From assembly GCA_964035545.1 (NCBI GenBank), contig OZ037773.1:1145751-1209750 (forward strand): 64,000 nucleotides of DNA. The letters are read 5' to 3'. Positions 2,852 to 27,900 of the stretch are shown here, in pieces. The position numbers and the translations under genes were made by a program. Positions within the stretch are counted from its first letter, which is position 1. Each line of letters opens with the position of its first letter. The DNA is from Bugula neritina (taxonomy: Eukaryota > Animalia > Bryozoa). The notes under the pieces were generated by a model, which was given only the letters and a program-made list of their open reading frames with translations, had not been told where the DNA came from and ran no database searches.

Positions 2852-4565
2852 ATGGAGAAATACTCAGTTCAGGTAGACCTACACAGAAGCAGAGTGAAAG
2901 CTCTTACTGCCATGCTAGCTTTCACTTGGGTGGTATTACTAAGTTTGATAGCTTGCAATGTCATCTTCTGGCAGGCTGGCCGACTGGGCACTTGCTCTCC
3001 TGTGTCATCCTCAATAGCCAATAACACTGCAGCTGTAAGTATCTGGTAACTGGACAAATCTTAATTATTTATTAACTATTTGAATAATTAATGACTCAGG
3101 GCAAATGATGATCATTTCTTAAGCTTGACTTCAAATTTGAAATAATTTTAACATGCATATATCTTATTTCAAATGTTCTAAGAGATCTAAATTTATGCAA
3201 ATTTTTTTTGTTTTGCCATCCTACAAAATATTATATTTTTATGACTGTATTGGAATCGCTATAATAATTACTATAGGGCCTATTAAGTTGCGATTACATA
3301 TGTTTAAATGTGATTAAAAATTTTTTTTTTCTTTTTATTGCTTTAGAATGTTGAATTAGGGCAACAACTCCAGATAAAGGCAGAAGTGATAAGCAGGGTA
3401 AAGAGGGGAGATGACGATGATGACCGAGAAGTAAATACCTATATAGATTACTTTCTATTTCACGCTTTAAGCTTTCTCTTTCTTTTGCGTAATCGCTTTA
3501 AATTCTAATGAGATTTAAAAATTCTGAAACATTAATTGCAGTGTTGTTACTCAATTCCAGGGCACCTGTTAACTGAACTAAAATACTAATGTTGACATGA
3601 TTAATTTGCACATTCTTATAAGGACACTGAATAGTCCTGAGATATTATTAATTGACCTCCATTATTCAAAGAAGAAAAACCATTAAGAAAATTATTCTGT
3701 AGTAATATGGGTTGGCCTATATAGTGTCAACATGCTGGAATTTTAATTGTTATGTTGAAAGATCGCATTACACTAATGTATTATGATATTTATATACTAA
3801 TATGTAATTTTTTATTGGCAGATGACACACCTTTATTTTGAATGCTAGCTGTTTGAATACAACTTAAAAAACTGTTTTACAAGCATTATTTTGTTTTAAT
3901 TACATTAAGCTGCGCATAGCATTACTCATAGCAGTGGGTGCATCACTCCAGCCTGTGCTCTCAAAAAACCTTTCAGCAACTGAGGTCTGCAAGCAAGTTT
4001 GACTCAAAAATTGACAATAAGGCCCCAGGCTATGCCAATGATCATTATATGGCAGCTAGAGAGGAATTTAGATTGGAGAGGAATTCATCATGCAGCTGAT
4101 GTACTTGTACAACCACTTGGCATAACTTCCATGTGCCGCCCTGTAAACCTTGGAAGATATATTCAACATGTCAACATAACGCTTTCTGGCCCATGAATAA
4201 ATTAGTCATTTTTTTGCCTTCACTTGAAATTTTCTTCCATTCAGCTAAAAATTAGAATCAGTTTTTATTCACATTGTATTTCTCATAAGATAGATATACT
4301 ACTAGAGCAAAGGGAGTAGCTTTTATTTGTGTCTGGTAACTGTTCAAGATATTTTCTTTAGATCTTTGGAACTCATGGGTTTTGTCGAATTGTCCAACAC
4401 ACTTCCTGTAGTCTCTTCAGAAGAAAGAGATCTGAAGATGACAGAAAGGTATATGTATGCACTCCGTATGTCAATGAAAAATCTGCCGCAGGAGCTATGA
4501 AAGTTGGAAATGGAGTTGGGGGAGTGAGCTGCTACCCCCGTGCTATGATTGTTTGCGGAGAATAA
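2852..4565 (+). CDS. Uncharacterised type II membrane-anchored/secreted cysteine-peptide precursor, copy A (156 aa; exons 2852-3034, 3347-3430, 4362-4565)
   Basis: Canonical GT/AG phase-0 introns. Hydrophobic anchor ALTAMLAFTWVVLLSLIACNVIFW, then RVKR|GDDDDDRE, CRIVQHTSC, RRKR, VYVC and CYPRAMIVCGE*. Homologous to copies B and C. Confidence 0.8.
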
Positions 4566-5038
4566 GAATAGGGCAGCAGCTGACAGTTGCTTTTTATATG
4601 ACTGAATATTATTTATAAATAGCTGATTTCTCCTCTTTTTATACATAGGTTATTTTTTCTATTTTTGCCGATTTCCATGTTTCCTAAACTTTTTGTTTTG
4701 TTAAATAAATAGCCTCAAAAATTTAACCATATTATTTTGCAGTATCTCTACACTATATCTCTTTTCTATCTCTATTTTATATATCACTATTTCACATCTA
4801 TCCTATAACTTATGTCCCATTTCTGTTCTACACTATATCTATATCAAATAGCTATTCTATTTATATTATTTCTATATCTATTCTATCTCTATTCTGTATC
4901 TAAATCATATATTTGTTTTATTCTATTAGCACATACAACTTCATTTCTTGAGTTAAAACGTTTCACAAGGTGAGGCAACTGCTATAATTCAGACTCTACA
5001 CACTAATTAAAGGTTTCAAAATCTTCTAATTAAAAACA

Positions 5039-5260
5039 CTCACGAAAGTTTATAGTCGTTATCTCTGTGAGAAATCCCTGATGGATAGGGTTTTTGTTAA
5101 AGCAAGATAAGGACTTAATTTAAATGAGGCACAGGAGCAACTATGACTGGATGCTCTTCCTAACATCACCAATGGCCTTTGTCCGGGCTCGAACCTATGA
5201 CCCCGTGTTTACTAGGCAAACTCGCTCTAACCCCTAGGGCCTAGACCATGACAGCTCCCT
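5039..5260 (-). mobile_element. tRNA-derived SINE
   Basis: The reverse complement aligns with 10741-10951. B-box-like ggttcgagcc and a ggaagagcatcc core are present. Confidence 0.8.
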
Positions 5261-5660
5261 CTTCAACATCTTCTAATTAGATAAGTTTTTAAAGAAATAG
5301 ACAGCTCATTCTCAAATTAATGATTTCCAACTCAACTCACTTCGTTCTAACTGTAAAACAGCTAGACAAAACATCTAGTAAAAAAGGTATGCAAAACATA
5401 GAGCTGAGAGCATAACTCCTAATCAATATGTAGTGTAGTAAGTTAATAGTTATCTTTTTATAGCACTAGTGTGAGTTGAGTGTGTAACTTCAAGTTAAGG
5501 CTGTGTTTTGAACTTGAAGATATATAGCAAAATAAATGCAATATCATGAGATGAACCCATATTTGTTATGTAAATTTATTTGCTTATCACAAACAATAGC
5601 ATCAGCAAAACAACATGCACCTTAGCATTAAACCTGATGCAAGAAGGCTGTTTATATATT

Positions 5661-6044
<384 letters not shown>

Positions 6045-6262
6045 CAAAGTCAGTATGTCCAACTAAATCAAACCTGCGGAAAATTTATAAAAATAGCTCA
6101 AAAATGAAAAACCCTGTCATTGAATTATATTTAATCGACTGCGAAAAATTCTATTCAGTTATATGAGAGTTAATGTCTTTCAAAAAATAATTATAGTAGC
6201 ACTTTTGTACTGCTATAAATGAATGAATAGAATTAAAAAAATTAGTATAAAAGCCTATAATT

Positions 6263-8481
6263 CTACGCAGCACATGTAACTACAGCTCGGGGTATGCAGG
6301 CCCCACCCCCAACTATGTTGTTATTTTCAGTGTCATAGTTTACTGTCAACTTTTCGTCATTGTCCGCTAGAGATAAAGAAGGGCTGCAGGTAAACACTTC
6401 CTCTGGATCATCACTCTTCTGATCAGTAGATCTCCTTTTTCTGTATCCACACGCTGTTTCATAAACAACTCGGCAGGAGCGGAATGAGTTTGCCGTCTGC
6501 ATAAAAAAAGAAAAGTTTTGGCTTTCACAATACCTACTTCAATTAAGATTAGAAAGAGGTTACGAGCCAATAGTTTTCTGACATGTTAGTCTGCGGTAGT
6601 ACAAGTTCAAGGTAAAGAAGTTTTCCAAACTAAATCCAAGCAAAGTGCAGTGTAATATAAATAACAATCTATAAAATATAATTTCAAACGTAAGTTTACT
6701 CTTTACAACAACCGAAACAAGCATTTAAACTTGACACTGATAGTTAAATTAACAACACACGCAACTCCAAACTTCAAATGTCACATTATGATTGAACTGG
6801 TGCAATTTAAAAACAGACAATTTTCATTTTAAGATCAAATTTCATTGAAAATAGTTTTCAAGAAAACTGCAAGTTGACTTTTAAAAGCGTTAATCGTAAG
6901 ATGTGATATCAGAGTTTAGTTTTTGCCAGACAACTTCTGCATTATACATGTATTTCATATATACTATAAGGAATCTCACTCACCCCCCTGTCATCTTTAT
7001 CATCTCCTCTCTTTACTCTTTCCAGTATCCTTTGACCTTCTTCAAACTTATTTCTCAATTCATCTTTCTAAAAAATTGAAACCAATTCAAAAATCTTGAG
7101 AAACACATGATAATTGTAAGAATTAGATTATATGGCTGTAGCATACTAATATTATAATTGAAGAATGACTGCTTTTACCTGCAACATACTATAGTTGCAT
7201 ACTTGCTGCTTTTACCTACAGCATAGCAGTTTTAGTCTTTGCAGTAACGCTATTGTGCAAAGTATGCAAATAAAATGAGACATAAGTGCAGTTTGCCCTT
7301 ATTTTCTTTAAATATTGCCAGTTTTCTATCAACAGTATTATATTGCAGTGGTCAAATTTAGGGGGTTATAAAGGGTAGCCCTTTCTTTTTTCCTTGAGGT
7401 GCCATAAATTTAACAGTATACCCTCACCATACTACCCCACTGCATTCAATAATATATGTGGAATAAGTTATTAAATGGTGAAACTCTATGTAATGTCAAA
7501 AGCCAAAGCACACAGGCTATTATAGCCAATGCCATTAAATTCACTTTAACAGCTTCACAAATAAACAGTTTCTCCATAAACTCACCAAGTTAATTTTTTG
7601 GTTCTATGTGTGTCATTCATGCTTGCTCAGTTTGTAAAAATGTGAAGTTGTAACACAATTAATTATTTTCACCAAATGAGTATCAATACAATAATTCATT
7701 TTCTTTGTAAAAGGACTCAACAATAAACCATTTATTGCTTATAGAGATGCAATACAAACTAACTATATTTATGTTTCGTATTTTAGAACTGTCACTTATT
7801 CACTTGATCCTATTCATTTTTCTAGTTGAGTTTAGCCCTACACTTTATTAAAATTGCATGCAGTCTGAAATAAGTGACAAATTCAAATAACATGTGATTG
7901 CCCAGGAAGGTAATTTACTTTCCCCACACCCTACTTCATTTGATTGAGGAACATGTCTCCAATGCCATCTTAAGTACTAGGGTGATTATCTATTTTATTT
8001 TCAAGATTCCTCCATCATTCTTTCTAGACTCTGACCACATAATAGAGTGATAAATCTTATTCAAAGAATTTAGAGCCCAGGCTAAGCCTAAACAACCAGG
8101 TGTTGGTTTGCGGTAAATAAAATCCCCATTTTTTGCAACTTATTCTGAAGGCAACTTAAATTTCCTAATATTTTATTAAATTCATTAGAACAATGCAAAA
8201 TATTAAAAACTTAGTTTACAGAGATTGCTATCACTAACATACGAGTAGTCCACAGGAATGTGTGCTACTGTATTCTACACCATACTCACAGCTTTGTTGG
8301 TGACCAGTCTCGTTGGTGCTAGAGATATTTCCTGGCTGGAATTTGTCAAGCGCCAGTACAAATGTATGTTGAAGCCTACTAGGCAAAGTAAAGCTATCCA
8401 AGTAGCAGCTAATGCTAAATTAAGTCTTTTGACTTTCTGTTTATAGGCTTCAATTTGTGCAGAGTCTTTCTCCAAGTCCAT
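6263..8481 (-). CDS. Uncharacterised cysteine-peptide precursor, copy B (169 aa; exons 8481-8290, 7067-6984, 6496-6263)
   Basis: Same three-exon, phase-0 structure and same 84-nt middle exon as copy A. Anchor LNLALAATWIALLCLVGFNIHLYW, then RVKR|GDDKDDRG, CRVVYETAC, RKRR, VFTC and CIPRAVVTCAA*. Confidence 0.8.
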
Positions 8482-9189
8482 CCTCTGTTCTTTGATCTCT
8501 GTATGGACTGACTCCAGAGATATGAAGCTATGCTATTGCAGCCTTTCAACTTTTATTTGCAGTCATATACCTTTCAGTTTAGGACATCATTATCATTATT
8601 TTTACATACTAATTGCAGTGATCTAGGGGTGGAGGTAACCACTAGTAGTAGCTAAAGCTATCTAGCTAGTTTAATGGGCGACGGCACACCTTAATTGATT
8701 GCTTCCAATCTAGCTACAGATTTTAATAGGCAATGTAAAGACACGCAGTAGTATTGCATTGTCACAGCACTTGGAGTGCTATAATTAGTTGCCAAAGGCT
8801 ATAATTAACACAATAAAACTAATAGTATGACCTCAAATATATACAGTAGCTATTAACAACTTTTCAGCTGTATACTTGAATTTGTTTTGCCAAAAGTAAT
8901 ACCAGAAGTAATAACTTAAATCTTCTTCTATTCAATTGGTGCACGTATTATGTTGTTTTAAGATTTGCATTCGGTCTGCTTGCAATGTAACAGAACAGTC
9001 ACTGAGGATCAATATGACAAAACAGAATATGCATAAGCTGTTAGACCTTTGGCCAGCCAACAAACTGAGGAGATGCAAGCAGAGCCTGGCATATGGTGGC
9101 CGCATGTATGGTATAGAGTTAATTGGCAAAGAAAGAAATTTAAGCAAGTGATGTGAAGACTTGATAGATCCCTCAACAACTTGAATGTT

Positions 9190-9375
9190 TTGTGTTCATT
9201 TAAAATCTTCATCTTTGTGTTAGGAATTCTCAAGTGAGCCGAGAAGTATGTTGTGGCACAGAAACAATTGTGACCAGCTGCTCTTCCTGACATCATTACT
9301 AGCCCTGCCAAGATTCGAACTCTTGACCTGAGCTCTAACCAATTGACTGTTCCTATAAGAGCCATCTGCGCTCAA
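9190..9375 (-). mobile_element. Diverged tRNA-derived SINE of a related subfamily
   Basis: The minus strand reads ggttagagc...gagttcgaatc...gatgtcaggaagagcagc, sharing the head and core of the 10741 element. Confidence 0.55.
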
Positions 9376-9779
9376 ATGAAAAAATTGCAAAAACTGTCAT
9401 TAATTGAGATCATGTTAGTTTTAGCAATTCAGTTTGTTTGTCTAGGCTTATATACTTGTATATGCTCCAAAAATACCTCCATGTGCTATATACATCAATC
9501 ATATATATGTTATATATTTTTAATATGTAATATATTATGCTTTCATATCATATATTTTATGCATATAATATGTGTAATATACTATATACTTTCATATGTT
9601 CTATTCTATGACATTTTATGTTATATAGTATATGCATAATATTATAATAATTGTTTGAACTACAAGTCATTATTAAAACACTCATGCTCAGGTTTTACTA
9701 CAGTAAGACTTTCTTTAGATTCCATAATATAGTTAATTTTAATAAAGTCTAAAGTAATTATGTGCAGTTAACAGTATGC

Positions 9780-10365
9780 AGGGTGTAGTGTGCAGTGTTT
9801 AACATGCAGTGTGTAAAAGTGTACTTTGTAGAGTCTATAATGTGTAGCCTGTAGTGTTTAGCGTATATTGTGTAGTGTGTAGTGTATAGTGTGTAGTGTA
9901 TAGTGTGTAGTGTGTAGTGTGTAGTGTGTAGTGTGTAATGTGTAGTGTGTAGTGTGTAGTGTGTAGTGTGTAGCGTGTAGTGTGTAGTGTGTAGCCTGTA
10001 GTGTGTAGCGTGTAGGGTGTAGTGTGTAGTGTGTAGTGTGTAGTGTGTAGTGTGTAGTGTGTAGTGTGTAGTGTGTAGTGTGTAGTGTGTAGTGTGTAGT
10101 GTGTAGTGTGTAGTGTGTAGTGTGTAGTGTGTAGTGTGTAGTGTGTAGTGTGTAGTGTCCGGTGTGTAGTGTCCGGTGTGTAGTGTGCAGTGTTTAACAT
10201 GCAGTGTGTAGTGTGTACTTTGTAGAGTCTATAATGTGCAGCCTGTAGTGTGTAGTGTGCAATGTTTACTGTACAGTGTTTAGTGTGTACTAGGTAGTGT
10301 ATAATGTGTAGCCTGTAGTGTGTACTTGGAGGTGTTTAACATGCAGTGTGTAGTGTGTAGGCTGT
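9780..10365. repeat. (TGTAGTG)n heptamer satellite with degenerate flanks
   Basis: Read directly from the sequence. It accounts for the HTTHYTL ORF. Confidence 0.95.
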
Positions 10366-10740
10366 AGATAATCAAAGTTTTATGATATCATGAGTGACTA
10401 AAGATTTCTAAAATGATAAAGCCTCTCTATTTGAAAGCGTTGAGCAACTTTTATATGCATCTAATAAAGTCGCAGGATGCTTGTGTCTCAAGTATTCAAA
10501 GCTTCATGTAAAAAAATTAAAACAATAATAAATATTTAATATACAATAACTATGGTTTTCACATTTAAATAATTATAAAGTGACTAGCTACGGAATAGAG
10601 TTGCACTCAAAAATGAGATTTAGAAAGTTGATTGAATGCACCCACAAGTTTATCCATGACCCCTAGCAACTTATACCATGATAGCTACCAGTTGCTAGAT
10701 TAAATCTAAGTTATTAAATTCATTAATTACCACTAATAGA

Positions 10741-10951
10741 GGGAGCAGTCGTGGTCTAGGGGTTAGAGCTTTTGCTTTGGAAGGAGAAAGTCATGGGTTC
10801 GAGCCCAACAAAAACTGTTGGTGATGTTAGGAAGAGCATCCAGTCATAGTTTCTCTTGTGCCCCATCTGAATAAGTCCTTAGCCAGATTTAACAAAAATC
10901 CTTTTCTATCAGGGGTTTCTCATAGAGATAGGGACTATAAATTTTCATGAG
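10741..10951 (+). mobile_element. tRNA-derived SINE
   Basis: A-box-like tggtctaggggttag and B-box ggttcgagccc. Three clear copies occur in the window. Confidence 0.8.
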
Positions 10952-11283
10952 GTTTTGAGTTACTACAAGTAACTGTTTTCCTCACTATATAGCTACTGTG
11001 TGCTACATTATATACTCCCGTACTAAAGATCCGTTGTCAGTAACACCTGAAGTATATTAGATGTTGTGAAATTAAAATAAAGAGCATCAAGAACAGTTTG
11101 TTTTGACAATTTTTATTGTAGCACCTTTCAAAGCTTTAAAACATATTTTGAAAGTATATTTCGTAGAAAGAAAATATAAAAAAGTTACAGCTACAAAAAC
11201 TATCTGGCTAAAAAATATAAAAAATAATGTAAGTATGTAGGGCATGTGTTAGAGCTCAACCCTGCTAATTGGTAGACCTAAAG

Positions 11284-13692
11284 CTAGAGATTAGTGTTCT
11301 GTAATTTGTTGAGGTAAATGAAGGCAATCATTGCAAAAATATACATAGTAGAGCCTATGTCAAAAAACAGGCCTGGTGCTACAGGTAAAGTGGCGGTGTA
11401 TAGGTATTTATATATTACAGTGACTACTGCACCAGTTATAGTCTGTAGTATAGCGACGTAGGAAAACACATTCCCAAGTTCACTTTTGTCTACCAGACTT
11501 ATTTGTATGGAACGGTTGACTGCAAAAAATACTGATTGCATCCCATAAAAAGTGGCACCAATCCAAATACTGTAAGGTATGGAGTCAATCGGTATAATTA
11601 ACAGTGCAATGGACATGCTGGCAGATGCCACAAGACCTAAGCGGGGCTGGTCTAGTTTTAAGAATTTTTTGAAAACCCAAATAATAATTGGCCCCCCAAC
11701 TACTTTTATCACATATCCATATGTATTGTACAGAGAGTAAAGAGTCAACGACATTTCTTTCTCTTTTATGAAATACAGGAAGCCAAGAGAATGAGGTCCG
11801 CTGACAGCTGTGAAAGCCAACAAGTAAATTACAAAACATAAGTTTAAGGAGAGGCGCGCGTTTCCCTCTCGCTTTCTAAAAACACATTTAATGGCATCTA
11901 GCATATGATTGAGGCCAATCACATCGCGCCATGTGTACTTCCTGTCTGATTTCACGGTGATGTCAGTGACACATATTAATACAACAGGAAGAGGAAGTAG
12001 TGTAAGTGCCGAGCTGATGTACATCATATTAGCTAAACCTAAGTTGTCTATGATTGGTCCATTAATCAAATATCCTATCATAGCGCCAGCAAGAAATGTT
12101 CCTTCGGTAATGGCCATCGACATGGTCCGGTTTTCTGCTGTTGAAGTGAGTGCGATGTAGCTAAAACTTGACATCAGAACCTGTAGTGCAGGAACTCAGA
12201 ATTACAACATGGTCTAATCGTAACTTTGACTTTGTTCAATATAACTAATCAAAAAACAATTAGCTGCACCTGGAATAACATCTAGACCAACTCAAATTTG
12301 GTCTTAGCATAGTATCTAATAAAATACCCTAATCTCACTAATTTACTCCAATCAGATTTAGCCCAATCGTTTGAAGGACAAACAATTAAATTGGCAGAAA
12401 TTGTTTTTAAGCTTTGGAATATGTTAAAATCGTAGGAATTGATATAATTTTTTTTATCAACCTTTAAAGAAATTTTTTTGTAAATAAGCTATAGCTATAT
12501 TTGTTTTTCTACTTTTTAAAAAAGAATATATAATAATTTATTTCAAACAATAATAAATCTCACATACTTAGTTTTAAGATGGTTTAAAAAATAATTTAAA
12601 CATATATACCTACTAACCATAGAATATGAGCCAAGAAAACTTAGAAGAACAGAGTATCCAAGTACTGAGATCATTGGCCAGTCAACAAACTGAGGAGTTG
12701 CAAGCAGAGCCAGGTATATGGTGGCAACAGCACTACCAACACATGGCAGCATGTATGGTAGCTTATGACCAATCCTGTCACAGTAAGAACTTAGCATGAG
12801 GTTCACTATCACACAGAGTGGAAGGTAGGTGAGGACGTGATAGTTACCCCAAACAGCTACCTGGTCCTAAATTGCAAAACCATAAATATTGCATATAGTT
12901 TATATTTCTTATATACGAAAGATTTCTAAGATCTACAAAATTAAATCATATTTTATTTGCAATAATCTTACTCTGAGATTTTCTAAGAGTGATTCAAATA
13001 AGGATTGTCATGATTTATAAGTACTGATCTGAGTCAGTATAGTCATGAGTTATAAGTTGTAATGTGGGTCAGTATAGTCATGAGTCATAAGTACTAATGT
13101 GGGTCAGTATAGTCATGAGTCATAAGTACTAATGCGAGTCAGTATAGTCATGAGTCATAAGTACTAATCTGAGTCAGTATTGTCATGAGTCATAAGTACT
13201 AATGCGAGTCAGTATAGTCATGAGTCATAGGTACTCAGTTTGTATGAGAACTAAGCACAATAAAGTTTATCATGACGCTGGCTGGTTTGATTGACACATA
13301 TGAAATCTATTATGGTTAATGTGTTTTTGTGAGTTTCTGCTGCATAAACATGCCAATTGAAGAACTAACGCTGTGTAACGACAAACCTGCAGTTCTGGAT
13401 GAAGGACAGAGAAATCAGGATCCGCACACTGCGTCTGGTTTTTGTACTGGAGGTAGCATATCTTGTTGAAAAGCACAGCATCCAAACATATCAAGTTTAC
13501 AGCATATGGGATGAAGAAGAGCAGGTTGCAGACGTACACAGGATACGGAGATGGAGAGAAATTACAGAACAGACTTTTACCCACTGTATACTGTGTCCCT
13601 TCAAACTCTATGATGCTTTCCATGTTACTAGATAGTTTGTTGTTATAATCTACTTTTACCAGTTTTTCATTTGCTGGTTTCTGAGCAGACAT
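11284..13692 (-). CDS. SLC46-family (PCFT-like) MFS transporter, paralog 1 (~483 aa; exons 13692-13387, 12866-12618, 12180-11284)
   Basis: Multiple hydrophobic helices, a Cys pair in loop 1 (KICYLQYKNQTQC), the loop 2-3 motif SYCDRIGHKLP, RTMSMAITEG and RSIQISLVDKSELG. Splicing is in frame. Confidence 0.85.
13018..13237. repeat. 35-bp minisatellite, about 6 copies, intronic
   Basis: gagtcagtatagtcatgagtcataagtactaatgc recurs at 13031, 13066, 13101, 13136, 13171 and 13206. Confidence 0.92.
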
Positions 13693-14961
13693 TGCTAAAA
13701 TGTAGGGCAATGAAACAATAAGCATTGGACAAACTATGTATGCTTTCCTATATGCTAAAAACAGTGAAAACAGACAATTTAGCAAATTAGTCAAGAGCTT
13801 ATAGTTATAGCTCTTACCATATATTGTATGATGCAAGATGTCTTAAAAATAAACTCACATGACCAAAAGTTGAAAGTCGATTTGCACCAACTAGCAAAGT
13901 TCAAACGAAAGAATGACAGAACTTACTGGCAGGGTGACTACACGTTGCTTATTCGTCTTTCTGTAGCAAAAGCTAACCAAATATCCATGCAAGTATTTGC
14001 AGCTACTTATAGTGTTTTATATATATGATGAAATAATTTAGAAAAGATGCTTGCAAGAAGCTGAGTAAGTCAAAGCAGCTAGTTTCTAACTAAAATATAT
14101 CACCATTATAATCAGCTTCTGTATAACTAAAGGCTGCTACTGCCTGATAAAGTTTCATGTTATAAACTTTGATATTGGTTGCTGATGATAACACAAGATA
14201 AACACTTTAATCATCATTGTAATGTGAGGGGAGCTTTTATTGAATAAAATAGGCAACATTTCATCCTGGTTTGCTATATATAAATCGCAATTATTTTGCT
14301 AGAAATTTCAAAAAAACTGACTAAAACAATATTAAATTTGTCTAAAGTTTTAGTAAGGTAAAGTTCTTGTTTGACCCAAACATGGAAGCTCAATACGTTT
14401 TGCAAGATTAGAAGATTTTAACTTACTAATTCTAATAAACATAGTGCTTTGTAACGGGTAAAAAATAAAGCTGTTCTACTTGCAGGCTCTGTAAGTTAAC
14501 TAAAAACAAAGGCTAACTTGAATTGAGAACTAACTAAAACCATGAAAACTAAAAGCTCAAAATGTGTTGAACAGAAAGAGCTTAAACTCAATAAAAAATC
14601 TGAAGTTACCAAATGCTTTTAGTTTATACATAGCCTTTTTATTTGAACATCAACAGTAAATTTGCAATTGCTATCATAAATATCATAGTTACAGACCAAG
14701 TACTATATTGTAAATTAGTAGGCCATTTTAAATTTAAGATTAAACACCGAAACCTTGATGATGCATAACATAATAAAATGACAATATAGCTGCATTTCGT
14801 ACAATTTGTTATACCATATTCTAGATAAAGTAGCTGGTAATATATCCTAAGTAGCATAAAATGTCGAAAAGAAATAGTTGTGCTTCGGAAATTTAATTGT
14901 CGGTTGTATGGTTATCTACAAGTTTATATCTTGAATAATTTTTAATATAATATCATGTTTA

Positions 14962-15102
14962 TGTGTGTGTTTTGTGTGTGTTTTGTGTGTGTTGTGTGTG
15001 TTGTGTGTGTTGTGTGTGCGCGTGTGTGCGCTTGTGTTGCGTGTGTGCGCGTGTGTGCGCGTGTGTGCGCGTGTGTGTGCGTGTGTGCGTGTGTGTGCGT
15101 GT
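14962..15102. repeat. Interrupted (GT)/(GCGT) microsatellite
   Basis: Read directly from the sequence. Confidence 0.9.
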
Positions 15103-15429
15103 AATATGATGATGAGGATATGTTCTGCAGCAAATCAAAATATTTGTTCTCTCATACCAAATAATTAGGCCTTCAATTAAAATGTGTCCAAAGTTTGTCG
15201 GTTGATAATTTGAATTTATACTTTTAGTGCAAAAAAAGGGCACAGTTGGCATTTAAAATTTATTTTCGTTTTTTAAAGTATAGTCATAGCAAAAATAATT
15301 CTCTATTATAAGTAGTAAAACATATTTAAAAAATAATGATGTATTACAAAATTGACAGAAAAAAGTTATTAGCATTGAAATATTTCAAAACCTATAAAAC
15401 CAAGAGAATACCGTGTAAGGAGGCTAGGG

Positions 15430-17383
15430 TCAAGCACATGTATTTTTCAACCTCATTAAACACAAAAAGACTATCATGACTAACACGAACAGTGCCGAGC
15501 AGACGTCTAAATACAGTCCCGACGAAAAGGTCACAGTTGCGGCATAAAAAGATCTGAAAGCAATTGTGGCAATGGCACCAACAACCGTTTCGAGAATTGC
15601 ATCCACCCCAAAAAGTTTTCCTAACTCATCCTTATTCACAAAACTTATCTGTAAAGATCGGGTGATAGCAAAAAATACTGATTGAAACCCCCAAAATGTA
15701 GCACCAATCCAAATGCTGTATGGTATAGCGTCAATGGGGATGATCAAATACGCTATAGACATCTCGCTTGCAGCTACAAGGCCTAAAGTCAAGTGGTTTG
15801 GCTTGAAAAATTTTTCAATAACCCAAACAAGAAGTGGCCCTCCAAAAACTTTCATGGCAAGTCCATAAGTGTTAAACACAGAGTAAAGTGTCAAACTCAA
15901 CTCTTTCTCTTTAACAAAATAAAGGAAACCAAGAGTGAGTACGCCAGAAATTGCCGAAAAGCCTAGAATGTAGATGACAAAACATAAGTTTAAAGCAAGC
16001 CGACTGTTTCCTTTTCGCTTTCGAAAAGCACACTTGAATGAGTCCGTCAGATGGCTGAGGCCAATCACATCGCGCCATGTGTATTTCCTGTCTGATTTCA
16101 CGGTGATGTCAGTGAAACATATTAATACAACAGGAAGAGGAAGTAGTGTGAGTGCTGAATTAATGTACATCATGTTAGCTAAACCTAAGTTGTCTATGAT
16201 TGGTCCATTGATCAAGCTTCCTATCATAGCGCCAGCAAGAAATGTTCCTTCAGTAATGGCCATTGATATGGTCCGCTTCTCTTTTGTAGATGCTAATCCA
16301 ACGTAGCTGAAACTTGACATCAGAACCTAAATGAGAAAATAAATTGGCAGGTTAGTGCAAAGGCCAATGAATGTATACAGCATTATTTTGTCAGTGAGTA
16401 AAAGATAACATCCATAATAGTTGCACAGTATGCAAACACTTACCATTGCATATGATCCAAAAATGCTGTATAAAACAGAGTATCCAAGTACTGTAGTCAT
16501 TGGCCAGTTAATAAACCGAGGAGTTGCAAGCAGAGCCAGGAATATAGTCGCAACAGCATTACCAACACATGGCAGCATGTATGGTAGCTTATGACCAATC
16601 CTGTCACAGTAGGAACTTAGCATGAGGTTCACTATCACACAGAGTGGAAGGTAGGTGAGGACGTGATAGTTACCCCAAACAGCTACCTGGTCCTATAAAC
16701 AAAATTGTTCCATAAAAAGTGATACAGGGTTGATAAAATTTTCTAACTCAACTTTACTGCTATGCTAAGCTAAACCAAAGCAAAATTGGCATCTTATGTT
16801 TTGCACCATTAAATGAAGACATAATTTTGCTTCAAATTGAACTTTTTTATATCATTTGATTTTAAAATAATTCTCGTTTCATATCATTAACAATAGAAAC
16901 TGTAACTCAGACCAAATTCTAAAAGTTGAATCAATACTAGGCTTCAGCAATACTAGAGCCAAGACTTGCGTCACAACAAACCTGCAGTTCTGGATGAAGG
17001 ACAGAGAAATCAGGATCTGCACACTGCGTCTGGTTTTTGTACTGGAAGTAGCATATCTTGTTGAAAAGCACAGCATCCAAACATATCAAGTTTACAGCAC
17101 AAGGAAGGAAGAAGAGCAAGTTGCAGACATACACAGGATATGGAGATGGAGAGAAGTTACAGAACAGACTTTTACCCACTGTATACTGCGTCCCTTCAAA
17201 CTCTATGATGTTTTCGTCATCTTCAGTTGTACTCGAGTCAGCTTCCACTTTTCCCATTGCTTCTCTGTTTGCTACCTGAAGTGTCTCTCGGTCTGCTACC
17301 TGAACTGTGTTTACGTCTGCTACCTGAACTGTGTTTACGTCTGCTACCTGAACCTTGTTTACGTCTGCTACTTGGACCGACAT
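15430..17383 (-). CDS. SLC46-family (PCFT-like) MFS transporter, paralog 2 (~515 aa; exons 17383-16982, 16692-16444, 16326-15430)
   Basis: Same 249-nt and 897-nt exons and motifs as paralog 1. N-terminal VQVADVNT repeats. Confidence 0.85.
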
Positions 17384-18841
17384 CTGATGCAGCCGTTGAG
17401 TCTCTTAACAATCAAGCACCAATAAAATTATCTGCCGAACCATGATTTCACCAGGAAATGCCAACATCTGATAAGGTTTGTTGAAGACAGTGTAAAATGA
17501 TGTCGTGCGGTCTTGCAATGACATATCTACCCTTAGCCTCTTTAGAACTCTTACTGTATTTTCTCAACATGTAACTTAATGCGTCATTTTTTATATTATC
17601 CTGAAAGAGTTGATAACCATCTCAATATCCCACAGCATTGATCATGTGTTTATTTAGAGAATGATTTCAAATTAAACAAACTGATACTTCCTGCTAGTTT
17701 TGAATTTTTAGCATTGTTCAAACAATAAAATAATATAAAGTTTTGAAAAAGCATTATGAATAAATAAAGTAACATGCAGAATGCTTTTTAGCTAAACAAG
17801 TAGATATTTCACATTTCAAGTGTAAAACAGAACTTAATTCGTACTCACTTTTTCATGCACCAGGTGTGAAGTGGAAATTTTTTTCTGGCTAATCAGTAAC
17901 CAGGATACAACAGAGTATGTGCAGCTACTGTCTTAATGTGACTTCTTAAACACCCATGATGAAGAGATACCAGGTACACTTGTATATCCACTATGAAACG
18001 CGCAGCATAGCACAAGGCAGGCAGTGTGTCCTTGAGGTTGCATACATAGGCTAAATTCCTATATCCATGATACCATCGGAAGTAACTCACACCATTCCAC
18101 AATATGGAATGAAAGGAAGTAGAATGTAGTATATCTCCGTATCTATTATTGCTAACTTATCAAAACCTTCAAATAGTGGCCATGCATTATTATGTATGTT
18201 ATCTTACTAGATGGATGTTTATATAACGTTGAGATAAGATGAGTTTGCTATCTCCTCTACCCTCTGCATAGGACTTCACATTCATACACATAATGTTGTT
18301 GCTCAGGCTAAATTTATTCATACTATTCTATCACTGGTAATTTACAAAGAAATAATTGAACCTACATTGCATCTAGGAACACATTTTGTAAAGCAGAAAT
18401 ACTTGTAGTTACTTGAGAAAATTATATCAGCATTGCATAGGTTTTATTAGTGTTTTAGACAAATAACTATAATATATTAAAATGTGCACCAATAACATAA
18501 TGATGCATTTCCCTAATTGTATCACTACAAACATAGCATGTTATCGGCTAGGTACTTACTGCACTACCTTCGTGTGAACAGAAGTCTAACCTACAATTTA
18601 GTCTCAAGTAATTATTTGCTCACAAAACAGATGCACAGGAGATTAATGAGATTTTGCAGTGAATGTACATTAGGGTGTGAATATGGAATAGAGATTATAT
18701 CCCGGGATTAAATGGATTAACAACCATTAAATACCCAAGTTCTGCCAGCCACAAGTTGTGGATTCAGTCATTCACAGAGGCATGTTTACATAACATAGGA
18801 GGCAGTGGTTACTCTAGGAAATGTAAATAGAAAAGACAAAA

Positions 18842-20853
18842 ATGGGAGAGGAGCAGCAAAATAAACTGAGTTCTGTAAATAGCAATGTTGAGAAGTTGAA
18901 ATATGCTGCAGCAGTTAGTTGCATGCTACTAACTCTATCAGTAGCACTAAATATTACACTGCTGATAAATGTTTATGGCGGATACAGCTGGGATCAGGTG
19001 AGTGAGGCTCTGTTCTATTTCAGAAATCAAGATTTTCACAAAAAAGTCAATTATGGATTTGGAAGTAGAAACCAGCCAGTAAAGCGTCGAGTTAATCCGT
19101 GACTTATATGAGAGGATAATTCTAACATCGTAGAAAGTGGTCTAGTTGGAACCCTGCTCCTGTATAACGTGTAAAGTTACATTATTAGTTCGAAAAGCAT
19201 GTAACTGCAACCCTGTAGTTACAGTTGTAGGTGGTATGATGCTTGCTAATACGGTGGTCATGATATGATCATGCTATGCATATATTATTATGATTACGAT
19301 GGAATGGAGTAGTACAGGAATGCCATTACATCAAATGAAAACCAGCATGTTCTTATAATGGTTGCTGTTTCATTCAATTAACACTGTTCCTATTGGTCGA
19401 ATGAGAAATCCATTCCCATAATGCAAAGCATGGAGACTGTTCTCAGAACAGCCTCAACAAATTTGGACCTTGCTGTAATAATGCTGCAGTGGTGAAATGC
19501 ATCAAGCAAATGAATTAAACTTATCAAATATATTATTGAAAACCATTTTTTCAGATGCAAACATGTGACAACGCTCAAGGAGATGTACCACACTTTCAGA
19601 TGTGTGCAAGAGAGAAACGAAGCACAGACAGGCTCCAGAAAAAACTTAAGTCTAGCAAAGACCTGCTTTCCTTAGAGGTTAGACTTTGTACTCCTGTCCA
19701 CCATATGTTCTCATACTGTTGAGGTAAAAAGCTGACACTAACAAGTTATATTAAAGGAATACTGTAAACAGCTGGTTGTCCAGGTTTGTCTTGCAGTGTT
19801 AATCATCTGCTCCACGAACTAAATATATGACACTCAGTAATGCGTATTTAGGCATAGACACTTTTTATTATGTTAAGTACATGCAGCTAAAATTACTCAT
19901 CATTGACTCAGGAAGTCGAATAGAAGCTCATTGGTCACAGTCCAGGTGGTGCCAGTATAGCAGCTGACTAACTGACCTAGGTAGCAGTTTAGTAGCTAAA
20001 TAACTGACCTAGGTGTCAGTATAGCAACTGACTAACTGGCCTAGGTGTCAGTATAGCAACTGACTAACTGGCCTAGGTGTCAGTATAGTAGCTGACTAAC
20101 TGACCTAGGTGTCAGTATAGTAGCTGATTAACTTAGCTAAGCCCTGGTAATAAAGACAAACAGAATTTTGTGAAAACTCTGTAAAGCAAGTAGAAATGGT
20201 AACTGCCAATGTATTTCAATTATATTACCTAATTAGAAAAAGACTCGCCCATTTTTAAATCATAAATTTGGTTAGTGCTGCTAAATTGCTGTTTAAATTT
20301 CTGAAATCTGATAATGAATAAAAAGGTCAAACTTTTGTCAACTTTTTAAAAAACTTCAGTAAACCAGGTGTAGGCACTAAACAAATATCAGATAAGCACT
20401 AAAACTTGTCCTTTTTGCATTTCCTAAAATCCAACTGTCTCACTGAAATTATTGCAGGGTGAAGCCATTAAAAGCATTGTTTGTGTAGTGAAAGTTAAAA
20501 AAGATGGATCCGGGAGGAATGATGGCCGCCGAAGAGGTAGAGGTGGAGGCGAAGTATCAACACAACTTCGAAATTGTCGACGAGTCTTTGAAATTGTCTG
20601 TGATAGCTCAAGGAATTGGCATCATCGAATGAGAGGTAAAAAACGACGAAGAAATCAGCCAATTAAAAGAGGTCTTCCAGATAATAGCCAGAATGTAAGT
20701 AACGACGATATGGTGTGTAGAAAAGTTAGTGAGGACGTTACGACACTCAATCAAAGCATTTCTGCAAGTCAAAGTAGTTCTGTGAGCAGCAGATCGAGAG
20801 CGTCGACAAGAGGTGCCACCTGCAGAAGGGTCCCCAGAGTAATTTGTGGGTAG
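18842..20853 (+). CDS. Uncharacterised cysteine-peptide precursor, divergent copy C (~183 aa; exons 18842-18997, 20458-20853)
   Basis: Anchor AAAVSCMLLTLSVALNITLLINVY, a CAG|gtgagt donor and a ttgcag| acceptor in phase 0. Motifs CRRVFEIVC, KKRRR, MVC and CRRVPRVICG*. Confidence 0.7.
19943..20135. repeat. 32-bp minisatellite, about 6 copies, intronic
   Basis: The unit ctaggtgtcagtatagcaactgactaactgac is repeated. Confidence 0.9.
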
Positions 20854-21976
20854 GCAAAGCAAATGTTTCCTCAATATTTCTAAAATTAATGAAGATTAAT
20901 AGCCTTGGATTGAGTACGTTACGTCACACAGTCTAAGGGTGGGACTGACTGTAGACTTGAAGTTTGCTAATCCCTATTTGATCATTCAAGCATACTGTAT
21001 TTAGATGATCCATCTAACAGTTTATTCTGGTACTTTACTTCTTTATAGTTCTCTGTATATATCGTGTTTAAATAAAGATGCTATAATTAATCTTGAAAAT
21101 TAAGATCAGTGTGCAAGTTGTTTAATTCCTCTGACATTATTGTTACCCAGCAAAGTATATTGGCTACAGATATGTGCTAAATGTTTATTATAGAACCCAC
21201 TGCCTGTTTCAAAAGACAATATAGTCATACAATATATATCAAACCAGAAAAAGTTCATCAATGTATTTTTAGGGGTCAGCAACAAAACTGCAAGGAAAAT
21301 TTCGCTTTAATTGCCAACAATTATATTATCTGCTATAATATCAACAAGCCAAGTTGACACTAATAATAAATGAATATAAACGACTAATACTGAAGTCATC
21401 ACGAAATTCTCCTGTATTTTGCTAGAAAAGCTGAGATTGATTAAATCGACATGGCGCAATGATCTCAGGAAAACCTTAAACGATGAGGTGAGGCAAGAGA
21501 CTGAGAACAGTTATTGTATCTTTTAGTTCGAACAGAGAGAGGGAGAGATAAACCTCAACTCTTTCTGGCTGTGGTTTTCATAAGTTATACAGAGAGCTAA
21601 ACTTTATAGCAGTGAGCTTTACTTAGAAAAAGCATCAGCATTGGTTAGCAGCCCTCATTTCTAAGTTTGAAAGTTAAAGAACTAAGGCAATTAGTTTGAG
21701 GAGAAAACCAAATAAACTGAAGCATACTACTTATTGAAGTCCAGCTAACCGAACAGGACAAAGCGGAGATAGGTGAGCTGAAGATACCTTTTATTGAAGC
21801 GTAGCTAAAGGCAAGCAATAATTGATATAAATAACAATCAAGGGAATAGAAATTGGATGTAAAAACTGTATGATTAGTTAAAAAATACAATAAGCATAGG
21901 TTTAGCACCACTAACTATAAAAACCTACAGCTTTGTGTATAAATGTGATTGAACAGTTTAAGGAAAAGAGTCACAG

Positions 21977-24900
21977 TCATAGCAGCATAGCATCAATAAC
22001 TGTACTAGCCGTTACCATGGTGACCTTCTCACTCCTAGGAGGTAGAATAACGAGAGCTTGCGCAGAGCACACGCTCAGCAGACGACTACTTATCTGATTT
22101 CCTGTGATGGTAGCGGAGGGCAGATGGTCACCTTCTTTCCAAGAGAGGAGAGCTCGTTGGTACTCAGGCCGTGGGTCAAGGTTTTTTATATCGGATGAAA
22201 GCTGCAACATACATTTGGTTGTCAGACCGGAGATCTCAATACTGATTATTAAGACGCTCTGAGGGAATTTTCACCAACAAAAACTAATAAATAGGGTCAT
22301 GTAAGAATACTCACCTTGACTTTCCAAAGGTCAGGCATCGGCTTGGGGTCACCCGACATGGCCCGCAGAGCAGGCAGCACAAAGAGGTTACAGGTCACAG
22401 TGGCTGACACTGGGTTGCCTGGTAACCCGAAGAACAGCTTCTTTTTCCCTTCATACACGAGAGTAGCGAATGTTGTGGGTTTCCTGTGAATTAGAGGAAA
22501 TCTAAGGTACAATTGAGAGTAAGGAGAAAGCATACAGTGCAGAGGGTATCTGCAGCTTATTGGAATAAAAGGTGTGAGTAACAGAGAGACTATCGGAATC
22601 TTCTGCAGATTGCCACACGTTATACAAACACAAGGAAATATAAATATACATGCACAGTGGAATAATGTGAACACAGGCGGGGAGAAAAACAAGTGAATGG
22701 ACAAATGTTACATGCAGACTTACAGACAGACAGGCAGACACAGTTACAAACAGATGGACAGTACAGACAGACAAACGGAAAAACAAACAGACAGATGATT
22801 GTTACCCAGGTTTCATGAAGACTCTCCCAAAATGAATGTTTGCATTGAAATCAGTCTGAAGGACTCCTTTGATTAAATCCTGTAAAATACAGATACCCTC
22901 GATAACTACAAATATCTTCAAGGCGCCAGGGGGAGCTGTTGGACAGGAAATGGAGGCTATAATGTTGACAATGTCAACTGATACTTATTTAAATTTATAA
23001 CAGTTTACAGAATTATGGCACATTGTGAACTACTTATAGAGCTACTCCATGCTGGCAAGGGTTTAATGCTTCAAAAGCCTGAATCATATGACAGACAAAA
23101 ATTCTGGCAGGTTTGAGAAAAACAACTACCCTAAATTTAAAAATGGCATTGGAATTGTTTACACGCATGAAAAGTGCTGCCATAGTTACTGATACAAATA
23201 ATGGGTGTGAAAGTGATATTCAGTTGTAAAATTATGCTTTCTTGAAATAACCCAACAAAAACACAACCCACAAGTAAAAAAAAATTAATTAAATCACAGG
23301 TTATCAGGGAAGATACAAAGTTACATCAGCCCTTCTAAAAAAAATATCAATACCCACTGGATTAGATAATCTAGCAATGTAGTTCTAGAAATTAAATTGT
23401 AATTATACTGTATTTCACTTTCATGTCAAAAACATAAAAAGTGCAGTTATTAGCATAAATATGTATATTATACCACCTTCTCTCCCATAGACACGCCCCC
23501 AGATGTCACAATAACATCACTTCCTGTGAACGCCTTGTGGAGAAGCTGCCTCAAGTCTTCTACACTGAGAGTATATACACCACATGATCATTCTTATGCG
23601 GTGGGATAGTGACATGATGTAGTAACTTTAAGGGTGAACAAACTGCCCTTCCCTTGTGCTAATTGCAGCTGTGTGAAAACTACCACTTCAGGTGTATACG
23701 TAAACCACACATGTATTTCATATTATAGGCGCAGCTTTTTCCAATAATCATTAATTTTGCGATTTAGGTTCAAAACTTTCAACTACACAGAAAATAGTAA
23801 GATTTGAGACCTTATCACTCAAATTTTGAACAGCCCTTTCAATTGAAGAATATAGTATAAGACATTTGATGAGATTTATTTATGGTAATTTATACTTATT
23901 TATAACTTGTGATGGCATGTGAATAATATAATTAACATTTTCTTACTCTTCCCCTAACGGTGCTAATGTACAAGTGAGCTCCATCAGAACTAAACAAGGA
24001 GGAGAAAACTCCTGCACAGTAAAACAACTATAGCTTACTTGTCTCTAGCAATACCGAGATCTTCAACTGGTAGCCCGTGCTCCTCCAGGAGGGTTATGAG
24101 GGTCACTCGATTACTGTCCCGTATTTTGCCGTCACCCAGTCGGCTAGCTTCTGGCTCTAGCAACTGAGAAAAAAAGAAAACAGAAATTAGGAAAATAACT
24201 ATAATTAAAATAATTTATGTTATATCTATAAAACAAATAACTTTTTTAAGCAAATTTCTGACACTATGAAACCAGGATCTCTCCATACACTACCATGTAT
24301 TGTAGCTACATGATTCCTTCTTAACAGCTATACAAATTCCTATACATAGATAATTTTTAATTATATACTAATTCACAATAATCCTTTGTAAATTACTTTA
24401 AAAAGCAGAAAATCTAATTATTGGTAATTAGTAATTAATTGGTATTATTTAGTAATTACTAAAATATACTACTCTACCACGAGTTACATATACTACTCTA
24501 CCACGAGTTACATATACTACTCTACCACGAGTTACATATACTACTCTACTACGAGTTACATCTACTACTCTACCACGAGTTACATATACTACTCTACCAC
24601 GAGTTACATATACTACGAGTTACATATACTACGAGTTACATATACTACTCTACCACGAGTTACACATACTACTCTACTACGAGTTACATATACTACTCTA
24701 CTAGGAGTTACATATACTACTCTACTACGAGTTACACATACTACTCTACTATGTGTTACATATACTACTCTACCACGAGTTACATCTACTGCTCTACCAC
24801 GAGTTACATATGCCATTCTATCAATGAGTTAGATTTACAACTCATATTGTCTGCAACCTTACTCACCTCATTTCCTGTAGACATCACGCCCACTTTGGGT

Positions 24901-27900
24901 AATCTGTAGCAGTGGACAGTTGTAACTCCTGCGGTTGCTAGGATACCAACTTCTGCAGCCTTGACCTTCATACCAGGAGAAAGAACTTGTTGACCTTTCG
25001 CAATGTCAGAACCAACAGGTCTATGAGATGTAATAGAATGACAGTGAGGCAACGTGAGAAACAATGAGAAATAGTGTGATGAAGTGAGATAAAATGAGAA
25101 ATAGTGAGATAAAGCAAGATGTAATAGAATAGTGAGAAATAGTGAGATAAAATGAGAAATAGTGAGATGCTGTGAGAAAAGACACAATAATATTAGAGCC
25201 AATGAAATACAGAGAAAAAAGGGAATTCTTGAATTTCAATATTAACTCAATTATTTTATTGTTTAATTCAATTCAATGGTGTGGACTTACAGGGTTACTG
25301 CTAATACATCACTAAAATGTGTAGTAATGAAACACCAGCTCTACAGTGCTTATCTTATACGTATGCCATTACACAACGACTCCTATAGCTTCTGAAACTT
25401 GCGGTGCAACAAAAACAGAGCTAACAAAATAGATTGAATATGTGACACTACAATATCAGTCCTACTATATACCGTATATCAAGGCCTTTACTTGGAGCTT
25501 TAAGTATTTCAACCTGCAGCTCTACTTTCCCATCTTCACTAGATTTTATTAGCTTAGTATCTTCAACCTGCACCACCGAGTCTGCACCATCAGGTAGTGC
25601 CGCCCCTGTATTTATCCTCATGCACTCTCCGCTACTCAGTCTATGACTGGGCTGAACAGACAATTGAATACGAGGCAGTCATTGCAGAGAAATGATAACT
25701 CCAAGTTATGCTAGATGTGCTCAAGTCATAACAAATACTTCTACAGTGTGAATGCAAATAAGTATTATAGCATTTAATATGTAATGAGTTACTAAGCATA
25801 TATCTTCTTCCTGGTTTCTCGTCTACAAGAGACATACTCAGTGCTTTCTGCAGAATTACGTTTGTAACTGAAGTGTATGTGACAAATGCTATGGATAGTT
25901 TCATTAAAAACTGAAATAACTGTGAAGTTGATAAACATTATAGCCTGAGAACCTGAGATACTTACCAAATCACCAGTGACAGAGCTGTCTACCACCTTCC
26001 GAACACCTGCACCATCTGAGGCTACAGGAAATAAGATACAACAAAGAACTGCTTAGAGATAAATTCAAGTTCTTGGGATAGCCGTAGAGTGGAAACAGTG
26101 TAAGACAACTACCAAAGTATATAATAAAACAGACTAAATAAATTATAGTATAGCCCTAGACTTAGTAGGTTTTAGATAAGCTGTTGGTTTGGGTCTAGCA
26201 AAGCTGAAAATAACTCTAAATACAATAGAAACTTATTAAACACTATAATCATGGCTCCACAAATTCTTTGCGTAATTTAAACAAAAACAATTTTATTAAT
26301 TTGAAAAATATTCTTGAAAATGGCAACTATATCGGTGTGTGATGAAGCAAAGGTAAACAACTTTTTACCAATAACAGCATATCCATCTTTAATCGAGGCG
26401 GGAAAAGGGGGAAGAGGCTCCGGAGCGAACACAGACTGTGATAAGATTCGTCCTCTGGCAGCTTTGTACGACAGCAACTCACTGTCGCACACTTCTGATT
26501 GGTCGAGGATGATAGATACAGCTTCCTCTACGGCAAGCATAGGCCATGGTGAGTGTCTGTGTCTCCTAGCAACCAGGTCAGGGTCAATGTTCCTAGCTAC
26601 ACCACTGTCAACTACAATACAGACCTAGCTACACCACTATCAACTACAATACAGATCTAGCTACACCACTGTCAACTACAATACAGAGCTAGCTACACCA
26701 CTGTCAACTAAATGTTTAGCTACACTACGTCAGCTACAAAACAAGGAAAGAAATAACTCTTAATCATAACACGATTCTCACACCAACAGGTAGAAAATTC
26801 TCATAGGCAACTCTGACACTAGTTTTGCTTTTGAACAGATTTGCAAATATACACTCAATTATGAGACTGCATAACATCTGTCAACAGGAGATCAGATGCA
26901 GACAACATGTCACATGACAATGTGATATATTGTCATTGGACACGCTGATGCGTAAGATATTGCCATGTGTCACATGACACTTGACATGTTGTCAAGTGAC
27001 ATACTGTCATGTGACATATCACATGTGAGATACTGTCAAATGTCACGCGATAAAATGACACTTGACATATGACAACACAGCTTATCACTAACTTGCAGGA
27101 GAATGCAGGGGGCAGACATGCCCTTGGGTGGTCTGAGTGACACTGGCATTAGGAGGAAGTGAGGCAGATGAGGCAGGTGCTTGCAAGGCTTGATGTGTCA
27201 ATTTCACTTGTGACTTAGCATCCAAAAGCACATGCAGTGCGTGTGGCAATACAGGCAAAAGGAAGGTGAAACACTCCTATACAGACATATATTATTGGTT
27301 GATAACACAAACTTTTTGCTATTTTAACAGATTGCTTGAAGAGAAAAACTTCAGTAGGACGAAGGATGAATAATGTTGTATGAAAAGTACCAATCTTATT
27401 TGCATATCTATGAAAATTTATTAAATATTCATATTTGTCAAATACTTCTCTTACTTCTGAGCCTTTTTTACTTCCTGGTAAGTTAACTATAAGAGTTTCA
27501 CCACGGACTCCACAGACGGCTCTACAAAGTTTAACATTACCTTCAGAAGACAAAGACTCAAGTTGCGTTTATACCTTCACGATTTTCAGTCGGAAAGTTA
27601 ATTTGGCCGAGTTGGAATTTCTCCGAGTTGCATTACATTGCAAAAGCCACTCGTAAAAATTTTGTATCGTAATAACTTAATCGAAGATTTCGGAATATTA
27701 CTCAAAAGCAATAAAACTCCTTGTAAACATCGTTATTTAGTTATGACTTTGACGATTAGATGGCGTACTTATATGTTAATAACTTTATTGCCTACACCTT
27801 CTCAATTATCGCTTTTATGCTGTCAAGTTCACTAATTCACGACGTTTACAAAGCGCATCAAATAGCGATTAGGCGAGTCAGACTTCACTTTTAGAAAGTA

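Follow-up and report, generated by a model that had tools for sequence, protein, structure and literature searches.

Among described systems, the one nearest in layout to the genes treated here is the ITM2/BRI family (BRI2/ITM2B), type II BRICHOS proteins that are cut by furin near the C-terminus. The genes, which we call A, B and C, lie in a stretch of 64,000 nucleotides from the bryozoan Bugula neritina (C9:1145751-1209750 of the assembly; the window, numbered from its first letter). Their predicted proteins share with ITM2 a putative short cytosolic tail, a putative single N-terminal span, luminal R-x-K/R-R sites and a putative disulfide loop whose last Cys stands 1-2 residues from the C-terminus. 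In ITM2, the BRICHOS domain lies between the span and the furin site. In contrast, Pfam finds no such domain in A and B, the stalk of which has only ~37 residues, and they possess two basic sites and two loops. The loop encloses 7 residues as opposed to 16 in ITM2, and no sequence similarity was found. As the BRICHOS domain is absent, A, B and C are not members of this family.

Dibasic sites and short conserved Cys loops, one of them at the very C-terminus, are also found, together with variable spacers, in the precursors of somatostatin/allatostatin-C, MCH, urotensin II and elevenin. However, A and B have a long conserved tail and a segment of membrane-span length where these neuropeptides have a short signal peptide. 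Their loop spacing is 7 rather than 4, 6, 8 or 10, their last loop is not immediately preceded by a basic site, and no homology was found. TNF/ectodysplasin proteins, shed type II ligands whose stalk carries a furin site, are likewise similar in layout, but A, B and C have no TNF homology domain in Pfam searches and a luminal part of fewer than 130 residues. Bactenecin, a bovine cyclic dodecapeptide (RLCRIVVIRVCR) released from a cathelicidin precursor, has a C-x7-C loop starting with C-R-I-V, as has loop 1 of A, and the terminal loop of C, CRRVPRVIC, is cationic as well. Bactenecin differs in its cathelicidin precursor, whereas the loops and predicted peptides of A and B are acidic to neutral; the resemblance covers few residues and is most likely due to chance. 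Insulin/relaxin could be ruled out: the Cys positions do not follow the B-chain C-x11-C and A-chain CC-x3-C-x8-C patterns, and there was no Pfam insulin match.

We read A and B, with a probability of roughly 0.55, as paralogous genes for membrane-anchored, convertase-processed peptide precursors, with C probably being a divergent third copy. Peptide precursors typically combine conserved processing sites and short Cys-framed segments with free-running spacers between them. Both basic sites and both loops of A and B are unchanged between two assemblies and kept in both paralogues, and the variable stretches lie in the stalk and in the spacer. It is mainly this pattern that supports the peptide-precursor reading.

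Conservation of genes A and B

Models of A, B and C were rebuilt from the window sequence. A preliminary description of the locus had placed three spliced genes at 2852-4565 (+), 6263-8481 (-) and 18842-20853 (+), each with a tail, a hydrophobic helix, basic sites and two C-x7-C loops, and all motifs quoted there were found in place. The predicted proteins comprise 156 (A), 169 (B) and 224 (C) amino acids. Each gene has three exons, all of phase 0, and all introns are GT-AG. The start codons of all three have a purine at -3 and a G at +4, a polyadenylation hexamer is found 128-218 nt past each stop codon, and loop 2 always ends 1-2 residues before the stop. The features of A and B are as follows; the second assembly is introduced below.

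2852-3034, + strand: gene A, exon 1, with the 20-residue basic N-tail, the hydrophobic helix (2912-2971) and the start of the stalk; the second assembly retains the full exon, including its ATG, and has no replacement in the helix
3347-3430, + strand: gene A, exon 2 (84 nt), with stalk, RVKR (3395-3406) and the acidic block GDDDDDRE (3407-3430); junctions equal to those of the GenBank model
4362-4565, + strand: gene A, exon 3, with loop 1 CRIVQHTSC (4383-4409), RRKR (4419-4430), a single Cys (4458-4460), loop 2 CYPRAMIVC (4530-4556) and the stop
8481-8290, - strand: gene B, exon 1, with N-tail, hydrophobic helix (8418-8353) and stalk; the GenBank orthologue has 169 amino acids and the same model
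7067-6984, - strand: gene B, exon 2 (84 nt), with the variable stalk, RVKR (7019-7008) and GDDKDDRG (7007-6984)
6496-6263, - strand: gene B, exon 3, with loop 1 CRVVYETAC (6475-6449), RKRR (6442-6431), a single Cys (6388-6386), the variable spacer, loop 2 CIPRAVVTC (6298-6272) and the stop

The exon 3 products of A and B match each other with a BLASTP E of 7e-11, and over the whole proteins 54 of 170 aligned positions are identical. Invariant positions comprise the helix core, RVKRGDD-DD, which is the best conserved block, C-R-x-V-x2-T-x-C, the single Cys-x-Pro and V-G-G-x2-C-x-P-R-A-x3-C. The middle exon measures 84 nt in both genes, as described earlier together with introns that do not align. 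This also holds: the introns must be regarded as unalignable because the sole match between A and B at the DNA level is a 30-nt stretch over RVKRGDD.

Annotation already exists for A and B. GenBank has both as hypothetical proteins with the same splice junctions, A as KAF6039316 (EB796_002385, modelled from Met21) and B as KAF6039315 (EB796_002384, 169 amino acids). For A, the upstream ATG and the 20 residues before Met21 are retained in the second assembly, and these residues align with the tail of B. On these grounds, the 156-residue form is judged the better model of A than the one starting at Met21.

For comparison we used the second public assembly, GCA_010799875.2 from Virginia, whose genes were predicted with AUGUSTUS and transcriptome hints (PMC7576161). 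It contains both A and B in the same convergent arrangement, with the adjoining major facilitator superfamily (MFS) gene. Introns and flanks at the locus differ by 8.5-13.5% between the two assemblies and contain many indels; the exons of A and B have no indel at all, and the splice dinucleotides are kept. Ratios of replacement to synonymous divergence (dN/dS) were calculated between the two assemblies after Nei-Gojobori, and neutrality was assessed with a binomial test. For A, 13.0 synonymous and 6.0 replacement changes gave a dN/dS of 0.12 (P 3e-5), with one replacement and five synonymous changes in exon 3. For B, 21.5 synonymous and 22.5 replacement changes gave 0.27 (P 5e-5). Neither ratio is near 1, in agreement with the purifying selection proposed earlier. 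Judged by this comparison, A and B are real spliced protein-coding paralogues under purifying selection.

The replacements in B are distributed unevenly. The stalk and the second spacer hold 18 of 21 (13 in the 37-residue stalk, 5 in the 29-residue spacer before loop 2), two others fall in the tail and one after the second basic site. None affects the helix, the RVKRGDDKDDRG block of exon 2, loop 1 with its flanks, RKRR or loop 2, where seven codons changed synonymously. The contrast between stalk and spacer on the one hand and helix, basic sites and loops on the other is significant (Fisher P 4e-6), and the same trend is seen in A, where changes are fewer (P 0.011).

At this locus, the introns of the two B. 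neritina assemblies diverge by ~12%, and synonymous divergence (dS) is 0.13-0.22, though the Virginia sample was typed as genotype S. For a single species this divergence is high, and it points either to deep lineages inside the complex or to very high local diversity.

The genome searched, a B. neritina assembly of 216,009,554 bases in 321 contigs, contains each of A, B and C once, and transposon cargo was ruled out on account of this single-copy state. Profiles that include C matched only A, B and C across the 216 Mb, thus disclosing no further paralogues. Beyond the genome, Pfam gave no match at E up to 1, either with the exon-3 peptides or with the full-length GenBank proteins of A and B, and there was no significant match among PDB sequences. 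With exon-3 and full-length profiles, a word-indexed search of 5.8 billion proteins yielded nothing outside Bugula. An exhaustive hmmsearch of 1.84 billion cluster representatives returned two matches, both from Bugula, and queries of the ESM Atlas returned either a top feature score of 0.77 or no usable match. An open reading frame (ORF) from JGI corresponds to the same exon as exon 3 of B. No paper was found that cites the A or B accessions. The earlier assertion that A and B match no described family is thus borne out by Pfam, PDB sequences, protein libraries and the ESM Atlas, which gave only Bugula entries. By these searches, A and B form a lineage-restricted orphan family that has so far turned up in the Bugula neritina complex only. 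As the searched libraries contain few bryozoan proteomes, the restriction to Bugula means that the family was not seen elsewhere, rather than that it is absent there.

Candidate gene C and the surrounding locus

The candidate third gene was modelled with these exons:

18842-18997, + strand: candidate gene C, exon 1, with N-tail and hydrophobic helix (18911-18976); haplotype single-nucleotide polymorphisms (SNPs) 4 synonymous, 3 replacement
19555-19677, + strand: candidate gene C, exon 2 (123 nt), containing REKR (19609-19620); the least firm of the three modelled exons
20458-20853, + strand: candidate gene C, exon 3, with RRRGR (20527-20541), loop 1 CRRVFEIVC (20575-20601), KKRRR (20638-20652), a single Cys (20716-20718), loop 2 CRRVPRVIC (20821-20847) and the stop

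The open frame of exon 3 encodes 141 amino acids. Basic sites are present in all three genes, as the preliminary description had stated, but its RRRGR site in C does not conform to R-x-K/R-R; a canonical REKR is found in exon 2 of C instead. The two loops of C resemble each other (CRRVFEIVC and CRRVPRVIC), and this likeness hints that loops 1 and 2 might be an internal repeat.

The three-gene family as first proposed holds for A and B by sequence similarity, while the case for C is one of layout. C shares with A and B the plan of three phase-0 exons, the order of the motifs, the tail and the helix. Of 1967 six-frame ORFs in the window, only those of A, B and C contain C-R-x-V-x4-C, and all three also end in C-x7-C. 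This joint motif is expected ~1.4e-4 times per window and occurred 0 times in 6 Mb of simulated sequence, figures that are somewhat inflated by the motif having been defined with C in view; yet C lies 10 kb from B. Moreover, B and C match over loop 1 with a BLASTP E of 0.004.

These points have to be set against the view that C lies outside the family or is no gene at all, so that the family would consist of two genes and the layout of C would be a coincidence in an open frame. When profiles are made from the A and B sequences of the two assemblies, C goes undetected in the genome, which also tells against counting it as a third precursor. When such a profile was run on the window only, exon 1 of C scored 3.8 bits (E 6) and exon 3 was not listed. 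BLASTP between A and C is not significant, and C has no GenBank model. An orthologue was not retrieved by metagenome scans with a protein query and a degenerate pattern for NCRRVFEIVCD, nor by walking on VXIV02000278.1 and two JGI contigs, which reached window positions 16696 and 18353. The one sequencing run found to contain the stretch is a DNA run with two haplotypes, and the SNPs between them point both ways. All three in exon 2 are replacements, including Cys56Arg, which loses a Cys. Over all exons, in contrast, there are 5 synonymous and 6 replacement SNPs where ~77% replacements would be expected (P 0.085 against neutrality). The only exon indel, AAG in exon 2, is an in-frame one of 3 nt, whereas the intron indels measure 1, 2 and 1 nt. 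On balance, C is probably a true, divergent family member that should be treated as a candidate, with exon 2 as its least secure part, and we consider its exclusion from the family rather unlikely.

In the same DNA run, two haplotypes of ~58x each with a SNP density of ~2.7% span 18823-19961, whereas one merged contig, free of heterozygous sites, covers 20122-20900. Its contigs differ from the assembly at full depth by an AAG insertion at 19647 and C>T at 20703, which may reflect another individual or errors in the assembly consensus. The first intron of C includes a short high-copy repeat at 19393-19469, where contig depth is 938 (~120 elsewhere) and loose ends are numerous; the second intron has a 32-nt tandem repeat with 5.8 copies at 19948-20133.

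The genes around A, B and C are ordinary animal genes:

11284-13836, - strand: MFS transporter gene 1 (Pfam MFS_1 / BT1), folate-transporter-like, between B and C
15430-17383, - strand: MFS transporter gene 2 (Pfam MFS_1 / BT1), folate-transporter-like, in tandem with gene 1
22297-27553, - strand: MoeA/gephyrin-like exons
37768-38118, - strand: exon of a clathrin-H-link domain gene
40910-41263, - strand: TSNAXIP1-like exon
47575-47892, + strand: aldo-keto reductase exon
53415-53975, - strand: DHHC palmitoyltransferase exon
59807-60115, + strand: NDUFA12 exon

The GenBank assembly appears to fuse parts of both tandem MFS genes into one model of 499 amino acids. A perfect (GT)170 microsatellite lies at 5703-6043, between the convergent ends of A and B, and a 7/14/21-nt minisatellite at 9841-10367.

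Probable membrane topology and proposed precursor processing

Each of the three proteins has one hydrophobic segment, a run of 20-24 residues whose best 19-residue window reaches a mean Kyte-Doolittle hydropathy of 1.9-2.3. In A and B, 20-21 residues with 4-5 Lys/Arg precede the helix and one Lys/Arg follows it. AlphaFold2 was confident for the helix only (predicted local distance difference test, pLDDT, 82-89 over residues 11-40). The helix is unchanged between the assemblies, and the N-tail is conserved between the paralogues. Owing to the length of the span, its complete invariance and the conserved tail, the segment is most likely an uncleaved signal anchor with the N-terminus inside (type II).

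From the anchor, the following course of events can be proposed for A and B. A conserved basic N-tail of ~20 residues would be followed by the signal-anchor helix of 20-22 residues and by a fast-evolving stalk. Furin-type convertases act in the secretory pathway, and one of them would cut at RVKR late in this pathway. A second convertase cut at RRKR in A or RKRR in B would then release two small peptides, with predicted lengths of 26-27 and 44-54 amino acids, each with one C-x7-C disulfide loop. These might act outside the cell, more likely in signalling than as cationic antimicrobials. As hand-counted from charged residues, the predicted A and B peptides have a net charge of about -4 to 0, and only C is basic. 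A cationic antimicrobial role of A and B was therefore rejected as the leading explanation, and with low confidence we favor signalling, as the predicted peptides are acidic to neutral. An enteropeptidase-like second cut after GDDDDDR was likewise rejected, since the Arg is Gln in A of the other assembly. The pairing of the disulfides, a two-chain product, dimerisation through a free Cys and a role in defence or as a toxin are possibilities that we infer only. The odd Cys invoked for dimerisation is present in B, with 5 Cys C-terminal to the helix, but not in A and C, with 6 and 8, respectively.

Several observations weigh against processing into loop peptides. The nearest basic site precedes the last loop by 33-44 residues, which is not the case in classical C-terminal loop peptides, and an amidation signal common to A, B and C was not found. 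The number of Cys differs among the three proteins. Furthermore, the loops find no fold support: AlphaFold2 gave a mean pLDDT of 51, with values <50 from residue 72 on and thus for the luminal part, and ESM Atlas models had a pLDDT of 0.42-0.52. Low structure confidence could also be taken to indicate that A and B are prediction artefacts rather than genes. This is very improbable given the dN/dS values of A and B, their indel-free exons inside indel-rich introns and their conserved splice sites.

Part of these observations would fit small type II membrane proteins that are never cleaved. Their Cys loops, together with the acidic and basic blocks, would serve binding or sorting on the cell surface or inside an organelle, and peptides would not be released. 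Tail and helix are conserved as much as the loops, RVKRGDD-DD is conserved well past the four residues that a convertase needs, and the proteins have no amidation or other peptide-maturation signal in common. Such uncleaved proteins nevertheless appear unlikely to us: each paralogue retains two R-x-K/R-R sites in either assembly, and the variable stretches are located exactly between basic sites and loops. We give about the same low credence to a classical secreted prepropeptide, in which the hydrophobic segment would belong to a cleavable signal peptide whose n-region is unusually long, so that nothing remains membrane-bound, the convertase steps being as above. The Met21-start model of A bears the name 'Secreted protein' in UniProt, and in both A (...FWQAG) and B (...CLVG) the residues past the hydrophobic core are small. 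Signal peptides, however, usually evolve fast, whereas this hydrophobic run has the length of a membrane span and is invariant between the assemblies, the 20-residue tail is conserved between the paralogues and the upstream ATG is kept. With a cleaved signal peptide as with the anchor, the C-terminal part is predicted to enter the secretory pathway. The membrane-anchored, convertase-processed precursor hence stays our preferred reading of A and B.

Possible implications for bryozoan peptide signalling

Invertebrate genomes commonly contain orphan small secreted proteins. Should no peptides be made from A and B, the two would stand as one more of the numerous small-protein families restricted to a lineage. 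Few animal phyla have received less study of their peptide signalling than Bryozoa. A published neuropeptide survey of B. neritina reported 11 precursors, found by homology (PMC4990251), and the motifs and peptides of A and B are absent from this set. A survey built on homology could not have found them.

We may thus tentatively envisage a bryozoan-restricted signalling system in which a type II tethered prohormone is cut twice to yield two peptides with a previously undescribed C-x7-C framework, and in which tethering controls the place and time of release. This goes beyond the precursor reading itself, and we hold it as a possible rather than a probable extension. If the peptides are indeed made, A and B would exemplify small precursors that are membrane-anchored but lack a BRICHOS domain. 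Their products would then be candidates for the regulation of zooid or larval physiology in B. neritina, a major fouling organism and the host of the bryostatin symbiont.

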